Shown here in pieces: positions 43,301 through 46,300 of a stretch of 64,000 nucleotides of DNA. Every line of letters starts with the position of its first letter. The first letter of the stretch is position 1. The position numbers were made by a program, and so were the translations under genes. Origin of the DNA: Trichoplax adhaerens (taxonomy: Eukaryota; Animalia; Placozoa); the NCBI RefSeq assembly GCF_000150275.1, contig NW_002060943.1:3222444-3286443 (forward strand), given 5' to 3'. The notes under the pieces are model-generated. The model made no database searches. It had not been told where the DNA came from and saw nothing but the letters and a program-made list of their open reading frames with translations.

Positions 43301-46300
43301 AGACGAAAAGTCCAGTGTTGCAATTGGACAATCATAATATCTAAAAATATCATTACTTTCATAAGTGATGATGTTGGTAAAGAAAGCAAAGGATGAATAA
43401 TACAAATTATTGACAATTTCAGTAAAAGCCAACCCTCTGACTGGTTCAATTACAATAGCTCCTGTGTAATCATCGCCAGCTTCCGCTTTATGTGCCGGCA
43501 TTAACATTTTTTCTTCTTTGGCCTTATAAAATATGCAAGCAGTAGAAAGATCAGCTGAAAGAACACGAATAGTCACACTAATAATCTAGACTGGTATATT
43601 ATACATTCAGACTTACGTAGCGAAGTAATTGTGATACTACTTTGATTTGTTGGCCGCGAGTCAACAGACAACCAAGTGGAACACCAGTAACTCTTGCCAT
43701 TTCCATATAGTTTATAATACACATTAGCTTATCTAGCAATTTTATGGGTAAACTTGCATTCTTAAGGCAATAAATTGCCAATCTTCTGCGTGATCGGTCG
43801 TTACCGCGCTTGAGTATCCACAAATAAAATGATAAATCCTTAATTACAAGCGGATCGAATAGTTTATAACATGTAAAGCTATATTTTCTTACCAGTAGGT
43901 CTGCAATTACACTTGGTTGAAGAAGTTCTTTTTGCTCTTTTAAGAAGTGGAAGGTTACAGCATTTAGGGAGTAAGATCTTAACTTATAGTCACGCAGAAG
44001 AGCCTAGAAAGGCCATTAGGTGATCAATGTAATCACAGTTATACGAATTTTTGTAGAAGTCAAAAGAAGTACAACAATAGCTGTTTACAGCCGTTCTTAT
44101 CATTCCTTACATGTAATAAATCGAATTGAACACGACCTGAAATATTCATAACTTTGTTCTCTCGCTTGCCATAAGCACGTGATTGAAATGTATTTGAAGA
44201 AATTTGTGTTTTTTCATTGGTAATCCTACCCAAGTGAGAAAATTTTTCTATTCCTAAAGCTTTACTTCTATTAAGTAGGTATGGCAAACTGGAATTGACC
44301 ACATTATAGCCTGTAATGATATCTGGATCAACTTCAAGAAAAAATTCATGCCATGCCTGTAGGCACAAAATCAAAAATCTTATATTAAGAACATCAGTAT
44401 ATGGCAATAACTACTAGAACGAATATTGTATTCATGCGAGTCGCTACATTCAAGCTGACTAGATTTTTTTTGTCATTCAAAGAAAGACCTTGAGCATTTC
44501 TTTTTCCTTGCTAAAGGTGTGGAGTTGACATCCAACAATATTTGCACTTGATTGTGTGGTAAAAATATTTTTAATAAACGGTTCGTAATCTCCCTGACGG
44601 ATTACAACAGCCGCTATTTGAATAACACTGTCTTTATCTGGATCTGGTGTACCTATGCATAATATTAAAATATGTATCATAAGCTAACTATTAGCAATCA
44701 GCAGTGGTACAGCGCAATAAGCATTTGCAAGCATTATAAGTCTTTACCTCTAGAAGTGGAACACATGATATCGAAGCTTAATAATCTTAAAGGAGCTACG
44801 GCTTGCCATTCATCTTCTGCGGGATAGCTAATAAATTGATCCCAAGCTATATCAGCTTCAATTTGGCAACGAGACGTTCGATTCAAACTCGACTGAGCAT
44901 TATTCCATCCGGGCGCATGATCTCCACGAATCATGTATTTAGTAGCAGGTAATTCGATCCAATTACACCCAACAACATTAGCATCGACCATAAATCTAAT
45001 TACGTTAGTAAGTACGTTTATATCATGAGTAGAAATAATAACCGCCGGCTTACGATATATCGTACGTAACCACTTCCAGTTACATTACTGCAAGCCAAAT
45101 GCTTATTTATAGACGGTGACAGTTCTAAGATATAACAACATATTAATTATGTAACACAATTCCTATAACTACGTCAATTACCTAATTTCAAAATCAATAT
45201 TACTCTCATAGGTTTGATAGCAACAGACAGGGTGAGATGAATACGAAAAACCAATTTCCAGTAATCGTTTAGTAGTTTGCAATACTCTTGGTGTCGCGAC
45301 AGTGATTTTGAAGAAAGGAGTTTGACGATTTTCATGATATCCATATATACTGCAGTATGCGACAACCTCGACTGCTAAAATAGCTTGAGAGACTTTTTCC
45401 TTATTGGATTTAAAATCGTTCAAGACAGTCTTATTAAGATCATCTTGAAATAGTTGGCATTCTTCCCTCATCTCTGATTGCCTACAAGTTGGAGGAACTT
45501 CCACATAAAAGTAAGGAGCAAAGCCATGGATGTGGCATATTACTGTATGCTGCTCCTTAGTAACTCCGAACATCCTGATGATAGGAACGGGACCAGTCGC
45601 TGCACCTGGCATTCCAGGCACAGGTGAGCCTATTACCACATCGGTAAAATATTAATTTTAGTTGTCAGTTTGTTATCTTTATATCATGCTAATTTATAGT
45701 ATAAATTACTAAAGCATCTCTAGTCCGTGAATATAAGGTAGTTAGTTAAAGTAGGAGTGGGTCTAGGCCTAGGTAGCTAGCCGGCTGATTTCTTACGATT
45801 ACATCTATCTGTATACCATATTATAAAATTACTTCTACAGTTATTCAATGCAAGTTATGTCACACCTAAATAGTAGTCCATATCCAACTGCTGAAATATG
45901 ATGGCATCTTTATTAACATCAATAGAATTTAATCGGGGTCGAGCCCATCTGTTGCGAACTGTTTCTGGGAAATGGTAATTTTCTGTCATAAATTTAGCAA
46001 GTGCTGGCACTTTATCAGTGATATTTGCCATTTCCATTTCCATTTCCATTTCATTTTCTATCGTCTCCATGGTTGCAAAATCTTCGTCTGTATCGCCATT
46101 ATCATCGTACATCATGCGCTTTTTCTTAACATTCTGTTCAGAATTACTACCAGATCTTCTTTTAAACGCATCCTGACGGCATATCAATGAAAAAGTATGA
46201 TTACTACTACTAAAAACATTGCAAATGTATCCAATAACGTTGCCTTTGATTATTCGTGACGATAAACAAGCTGTCTATATACAAGTAAGTCTAAATATTG

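Follow-up and report, generated by a model that had tools for sequence, protein, structure and literature searches.

The window, by which we mean the whole 64,000-nucleotide stretch of Trichoplax adhaerens DNA analysed here, contains a gene for the catalytic subunit of DNA polymerase delta (POLD1) in which three of the four carboxylates of the exonuclease active site are replaced, as alignment with solved Pol delta chains confirms. Judging from the sequence comparisons presented below, this single-copy POLD1 orthologue with a dismantled exonuclease site very probably specifies the sole Pol delta of the placozoan, an enzyme that would polymerise DNA but would be unable to proofread. Proofreading by Pol delta is held to be a universal pillar of eukaryotic replication fidelity, and its removal in yeast, mice and humans gives rise to mutators and tumours; a free-living animal lineage with these residues missing from its one Pol delta would indicate that the requirement for proofreading can be bypassed in nature.

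The POLD1 locus

The window is AT-rich (34% G+C), and POLD1 lies on its minus strand at 40320..46187, in about 23 coding exons delimited by splice solutions and by tblastn with P0014, a canonical full-length insect POLD1 (from Pieris). Residues 58-1082 of the insect protein are matched colinearly by pieces of the window running from about 45950 down to 40323, an in-frame GT-AG solution was found for each of the 22 junctions, the introns are 71-236 bp long, and none of the approximately 23 exons contains a stop codon or a frameshift. Where the gene begins on its 5′ side is uncertain: exon 1 has its first in-frame ATG at 46115, and its open frame extends to 46187. All homology searches reported here were conducted exon by exon and not with the joined, spliced protein.

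Alignment to the insect protein identifies a canonical motif A (DFSSLYPSI) in the exon at 43230..43340 and a canonical motif C (YGDTDS) in that at 42267..42404, and motif B (KISANSVYG) is likewise canonical in the exon at 42681..42782, which is 94% identical to its insect counterpart; identities across the polymerase motif exons are 80-94%. All three motifs are in frame with their catalytic aspartates, as expected of a B-family polymerase. Closer to the 3′ end, two exons (40757..41010) carry the CysA cysteine pairs (C-x2-C ... C-x2-C), and a further two (40320..40669) encode the CysB cysteines and run through the conserved C-terminus to the stop codon; the four cysteines of each of CysA and CysB, as well as this C-terminus, align to the insect protein. 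The best PDB matches of the four exons tested with phmmer are exclusively chains of human and yeast Pol delta (E-values of 1e-10 to 1e-24), namely human POLD1 (6S1M and 6TNY) and yeast Pol3 (3IAY), which are orthologues of the placozoan gene and share with it the domain order, motifs A, B and C, CysA, CysB and presence as a single copy. The original prediction, which was made from the DNA letters alone, had described the polymerase motifs, CysA and CysB, the reading frame and the splice sites that it checked as intact, and both the tblastn alignment and the full set of GT-AG junctions agree with that description.

Substitutions in the exonuclease active site

The placozoan gene departs from human POLD1 and yeast Pol3 in its exonuclease domain, where the Exo I Glu, the Exo II Asp and the Exo III Asp are represented by Met, Ser and Asn respectively, and where further alterations affect the Phe of Exo II, the Asp of KEDV and the loop following Exo I. 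The following correspondences are taken from phmmer alignments against the solved Pol delta chains, and all of the exons concerned are on the minus strand. The exon at 44748..44995 contains Exo I, which reads FDIMC as compared with FDIEC in human POLD1, such that E318 is replaced by Met (ATG, 44766-44764) and D316 is kept. The post-Exo I loop (GRKG-hydrophobic-F-PEP), read through the junction with the following exon, has a changed sequence and lacks one residue. In that following exon, at 44489..44652 between Exo I and Exo II, the gene departs at three columns from a residue that all nine full-length reference POLD1 proteins have in common. Exo II, in the exon at 44111..44356, reads NSS in place of the NFD of yeast and human, with human F401-D402 corresponding to Ser-Ser (TCC AGT, 44293-44288). 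The exon at 43893..44003 has NAVT for NAVS (Thr codon 43955-43953, human S478) and KELLQPS for KEDVQHS, the conserved KEDV Asp being replaced by Leu (codon 43925-43923, human D488). Finally, Exo III in the exon at 43617..43808 reads YCLKNASLP, with YCLKNA replacing YCLKDA such that human D515 is Asn (AAT, 43760-43758) and Y511 is kept. The DEDD(y) set, consisting of four carboxylates and the Exo III Tyr, is therefore reduced to the Exo I Asp and the Exo III Tyr.

There are four changed codons spread over three exons, and the Glu to Met and Asp to Ser changes each require at least two base changes, in keeping with the original claim that two of the three carboxylate losses are multi-nucleotide. 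The ATG, AGT and AAT codons that it had located in Exo I, II and III are where it placed them, both in the minus-strand reading and in the structure alignments, and the drift it had noticed in the neighbouring residues of the exonuclease pocket (NAVT and KELLQPS) is equally apparent in the phmmer alignment. As a separate observation, with the Exo I Asp and the Exo III Tyr surviving, a very weak residual activity is formally possible.

The changes are concentrated rather than general. We aligned nine full-length representative POLD1 proteins and added the exon pieces of the window as fragments (mafft --addfragments); the window gene differs at five of the 49 exonuclease-domain columns that are invariant in all nine, versus three of 101 such columns in the polymerase domain. 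Ordinary POLD1 proteins have between zero and six such exonuclease-domain changes and the window gene falls within this range, on which ground we reject a general decay of the domain. The exonuclease domain is thus maintained overall, with the alterations affecting its active site and the residues that line it.

To place the substitutions among those of other organisms, catalytic columns were scored by coordinate in alignments of the ORF-level matches of each exon. Of 120 ORFs of other organisms, 119 keep the Exo III Asp; the Exo II site is covered by 50, of which 49 keep Phe-Asp, and the Exo I Glu is present in five of five. The sole exception in the Exo III set, and likewise in the Exo II set, is a close relative of the window gene; with the relatives excluded, every eukaryotic ORF is canonical (119/119 for the Exo III Asp and 49/49 for the Exo II Phe-Asp). 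Because the ORFs of other organisms keep these residues, close relatives excepted, the exonuclease substitutions of the window gene are more than chance variation. The Exo I exon search returned only five ORFs, all canonical and none more than 63% identical, and a metagenome scan gave no sequence above 55% identity.

Probable loss of proofreading activity

Mutant alleles of Pol delta offer the most direct guide to the consequences of these changes. The yeast pol3-01 allele is reportedly the Exo I double substitution D321A/E323A, pol3-5DV is said to be an Exo III allele, and mouse Pold1 D400A is reportedly an Exo II allele; in these, as in the human POLD1 exonuclease variants, the same catalytic positions are affected as in the placozoan. 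The engineered and disease alleles are single-site and have mutator or cancer phenotypes, whereas the placozoan state involves three sites, is fixed, is conserved in relatives, and occurs in a free-living animal. Because of the enzymology of the DEDD family together with pol3-01, pol3-5DV, mouse D400A and the human variants, we infer that no meaningful exonuclease remains and that placozoan Pol delta has lost its nuclease activity.

Polymerases that are exonuclease-dead and nonetheless active are represented by Pol alpha (POLA1) and Pol zeta (REV3L), in which the exonuclease fold is kept as a structural domain and the catalytic carboxylates are lost. These two are ancient, separate paralogues, in contrast to the placozoan loss, which has taken place inside an orthologue of Pol delta, normally the proofreading lagging-strand replicase. 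The comparison also bears on the possibility that the placozoan enzyme still proofreads, either through a non-canonical site formed around the Exo I Asp and the Exo III Tyr, or with the help of a separate exonuclease that docks on the dead domain or on PCNA. Such an arrangement might account for how well the exonuclease domain is conserved from one placozoan lineage to another (92-97% identity for the exons of Exo II and Exo III) and for its not decaying overall, which suggests that it has some role, but the dead exonuclease domains of Pol alpha and Pol zeta are conserved too and conservation alone is no argument. Moreover, Met, Ser and Asn stand in place of three of the four metal-binding carboxylates, and it is established that single substitutions of these residues kill the activity in Klenow, T4, RB69, yeast and mouse. 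We consider continued proofreading to be improbable, and favour a Pol delta that polymerises without it.

Copy number of POLD1 and other B-family polymerases

Two readings had been offered originally: that the window gene is the only Pol delta of the organism and has given up proofreading, or that it is a specialised error-prone or strand-displacing paralogue. We searched the genome, a draft assembly of 105.6 Mb in 1414 contigs, in six frames with Pfam PF03104, Pfam PF00136, the Exo III exon and the full-length insect POLD1. The two Pfam profiles reveal five B-family loci genome-wide, whose identities were assigned by frame inspection; in addition to the window gene these are POLA1 (contig C1414, ~186 kb), POLE (C1403, ~713 kb), and two tandem REV3L-like genes (C1370), which have a large insert exon and a WDPDIL...GYEIQ...SWGY motif. 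The Exo III exon matches itself alone in the whole genome, and the insect POLD1 matches every exon of the window gene and elsewhere just the two REV3L-like genes, weakly (36-54%). The window gene is orthologous to neither POLA1 nor REV3L, both of which are present separately.

No second POLD1 was found in these four whole-genome searches of the 105.6 Mb draft assembly, a question for which the original prediction had proposed a TBLASTN of the genome; the assembly thus has one POLD1, the window locus. The reading as the sole Pol delta without proofreading thus gains from the search and the reading as a specialised paralogue loses by it. While a draft in 1414 contigs could in principle lack a canonical copy, four independent searches give no second gene, the contigs of relatives are in the same state (see below), the protein matches include no canonical placozoan-like ORF above 84% identity, and nothing that marks the replicative orthologue is missing from the window gene, CysA and CysB included. 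A missing canonical POLD1 is therefore, in our estimation, very unlikely. The supply of canonical motifs from alternative exons was also considered and rejected, because the introns flanking the exonuclease exons, at 84-132 bp, are too short to hide them.

Relatives sharing the substitutions

The N-terminal exon was searched against 1.8 billion representatives. Its matches include P0001, an ORF of 144 residues with 84% identity on a 7071 bp contig of an ENA assembly, and a Logan-derived sibling of it, P0151, whose N-terminal exon is 83% identical to that of the window gene. The same 7071 bp contig yields a 92% identical match to the Exo II exon (P0158), which has NSS, and the Exo III search and a cluster look-up yield two further ORFs (P0208 and P0338 respectively) that are 92-96% identical and both read YCLKNAT. 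Overall the relatives are 83-97% identical to the exons of the window; the Exo II and Exo III exons, at 92-97%, are better conserved than the N-terminal exon, at 84%. An exact look-up of the window exon ORFs in the protein collection found them absent from it.

Where the borders are visible, the ORFs of the relatives stop or diverge at the exon-intron borders of the window gene, and the shared exon ends fit orthologous genes with common intron positions. Since the genome of the window has one POLD1, the relatives come from other organisms, presumably other placozoans. P0001 and P0151 differ from one another, and P0208 and P0338 differ beyond the exon, which together suggest that at least two lineages besides that of the window are represented. 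By this comparison the losses at Exo II and Exo III are old, because independent relatives that are 92-97% identical in those exons carry the same changes. The comparison with orthologues of related species that had been proposed as a check of the original prediction consequently bears it out at Exo II and Exo III, where the changes recur.

The recurrence weighs against two further readings. If the gene were a young or unexpressed pseudogene, the polymerase part would have to be one that has not yet decayed; the evidence against this includes about 23 exons free of stops and frameshifts with every junction an in-frame GT-AG, the 80-94% identity of the polymerase motif exons to insect POLD1, the essential nature of Pol delta and the presence of no other gene for it, and the same substitutions in lineages that differ by 16% in the N-terminal exon, such that the state is old and the gene intact. 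We find a pseudogene hard to credit. A sequencing or assembly artefact, lastly, is negligibly probable: four codons are altered across three exons, two of these codons by two or more base changes, and independent assemblies from ENA and Logan show the same substitutions at Exo II and Exo III. Explanations by a paralogue, a pseudogene or an artefact are thus poorly supported, and the assertion that neither sequencing error nor pseudogene decay is responsible has held up.

Possible compensation for the loss

With a sole Pol delta that polymerises and does not proofread, the misincorporations of the enzyme would not be excised by the enzyme itself, and the fidelity of lagging-strand synthesis would be borne by base selectivity and mismatch repair. 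Purifying selection appears to act on the polymerase active site, on the fold of the exonuclease domain and on the C-terminal metal-binding module, the dead exonuclease domain perhaps being retained as a structural module in the manner of Pol alpha and Pol zeta. The maturation of Okazaki fragments would also be affected, in that they would be processed with no exonuclease idling, leading to more strand displacement and to greater reliance on flap nucleases.

Placozoans are not known to be fast-evolving, and a mutator polymerase is therefore unexpected in them and some form of compensation would be required. Mismatch repair acts preferentially on the lagging strand, and in yeast the loss of Pol delta proofreading combined with the loss of mismatch repair is lethal. 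MutS_V matches no fewer than six loci of the genome, and the MutL-type DNA_mis_repair domain matches three candidate loci, only one of which is above the Pfam cut-off. Its POLE keeps FDIET, NGDAFDW and YSVSDA, such that all three exonuclease motifs are intact in alignment to solved Pol epsilon. These are the genes that the original prediction had proposed to inspect, and it had named both Pol epsilon and mismatch repair as potential backups; the intact motifs of POLE are consistent with the former, yet in yeast Pol epsilon reportedly does not proofread in trans (PMC4351087). Because of this Pol epsilon is the less likely backup, and mismatch repair is plausibly the foremost one. Extra copies of MSH1 specific to placozoans have also been noted (PMC8438181).

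Natural losses in other lineages

Two of the representative POLD1 proteins have also lost exonuclease residues. That of the tapeworm Mesocestoides corti (P0027, VDD77563.1) has FDILC in Exo I, YCLKNA in Exo III, and TEYI for KEDV, with Exo II intact. The intein-containing POLD1 of Anaeramoeba flamelloides (P0090, KAJ6254963.1) has His-x-Gln for the Asp-x-Glu of Exo I, reads NFS at Exo II, and lacks the KEDV Asp. Both resemble the placozoan gene in a natural loss of exonuclease carboxylates and of the KEDV Asp; they differ from it in belonging to unrelated lineages, in the combinations of sites affected, and in being only about 35% identical to the placozoan N-terminal exon. By these sequences, exonuclease-degenerate Pol delta occurs naturally in at least three unrelated lineages, with the KEDV Asp lost in all three. 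A literature search that reached few subscription journals brought up no account of a naturally exonuclease-dead Pol delta, whether in placozoans, in tapeworms or in any other organism, and the Mesocestoides corti and Anaeramoeba flamelloides losses are likewise undescribed in the papers found. Together the placozoan, tapeworm and Anaeramoeba proteins form a comparative set from which it could be learned which residues of the exonuclease pocket, for example the KEDV Asp, serve catalysis only, and they bear on the reasons for retaining a dead exonuclease domain.

We know of no report of cancer in placozoans. A broader proposition, on which we find ourselves evenly divided, is that the loss of Pol delta proofreading is ancient and placozoan-wide in this slow-evolving, early-branching phylum, that it is convergent with the losses in tapeworms and Anaeramoeba, and that it is tolerated by virtue of polymerase selectivity and mismatch repair (including the extra MSH1; PMC8438181), perhaps with a contribution from the duplicated Pol zeta. 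If this is true, placozoans would offer a natural model of how an animal lives without proofreading on the lagging strand, in which mutation spectra are predicted to be strand-asymmetric and which could reveal what compensates.

The Pfam exonuclease profile PF03104 still matches the exonuclease exons of the window gene, with 68, 38 and 26 bits, and the domain is thus recognisable by profile; annotation pipelines call proteins of this kind ordinary proofreading polymerases.

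Exonuclease motifs in related polymerases

In the POLE gene of the same genome as the window POLD1 (contig C1403, ~712.7-715.8 kb), all three exonuclease motifs are retained; the motif loss is therefore specific to Pol delta. Degenerate Pol delta exonucleases are also seen in two other lineages. The POLD1 of the tapeworm Mesocestoides corti (P0027, VDD77563.1) has Leu for the Exo I Glu and Asn for the Exo III Asp, with Exo II intact, a state in which all six members of its cluster (P0027 and P0333-P0337) agree; a literature search gave no mention of these losses. An Anaeramoeba flamelloides POLD1 (P0090, KAJ6254963.1; P0347, KAJ3435302.1) contains an intein, reads His-x-Gln at Exo I and NFS at Exo II, and retains the Exo III Asp.

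These three lineages share the loss of a further residue, the KEDV Asp between Exo II and Exo III (human D488 position; codon at 43923-43925 in the window), which is replaced by Leu in the placozoan, Tyr in M. corti and Asn in A. flamelloides. Because this Asp is present in all of the catalytically intact sequences aligned, the pattern of sequence conservation suggests that its role is in the nuclease only.

Duplicated REV3L-like genes

Two REV3L-like (Pol zeta catalytic subunit) genes lie in tandem on the same strand of contig C1370 (L019, ~56.7-67.3 kb, and L020, ~69.1-79.9 kb) with a spacing of ~12 kb. Each has the large insert exon, motif A, the beginning of motif C (at an exon edge) and C-terminal cysteine motifs; their sequences are clearly diverged. 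This duplication may or may not be linked to the presence of a Pol delta without proofreading in the same genome.

Structure of the window POLD1 gene

The intron separating the NAVT/KELL and Exo III exons is only 84 bp long and is open in frame, such that the two exons and the intron read as a single open frame of 134 codons (43602-44003, minus strand), and naive ORF calling here would add 28 spurious residues to POLD1. Within exon 1, the basic residues upstream of the first in-frame ATG resemble the usual N-terminal nuclear localisation stretch, and this ATG is thus only a candidate start codon. The acidic N-terminal tail encoded by this exon includes a short Glu-Met repeat, EMEMEMEM (~46000-46040, minus strand).
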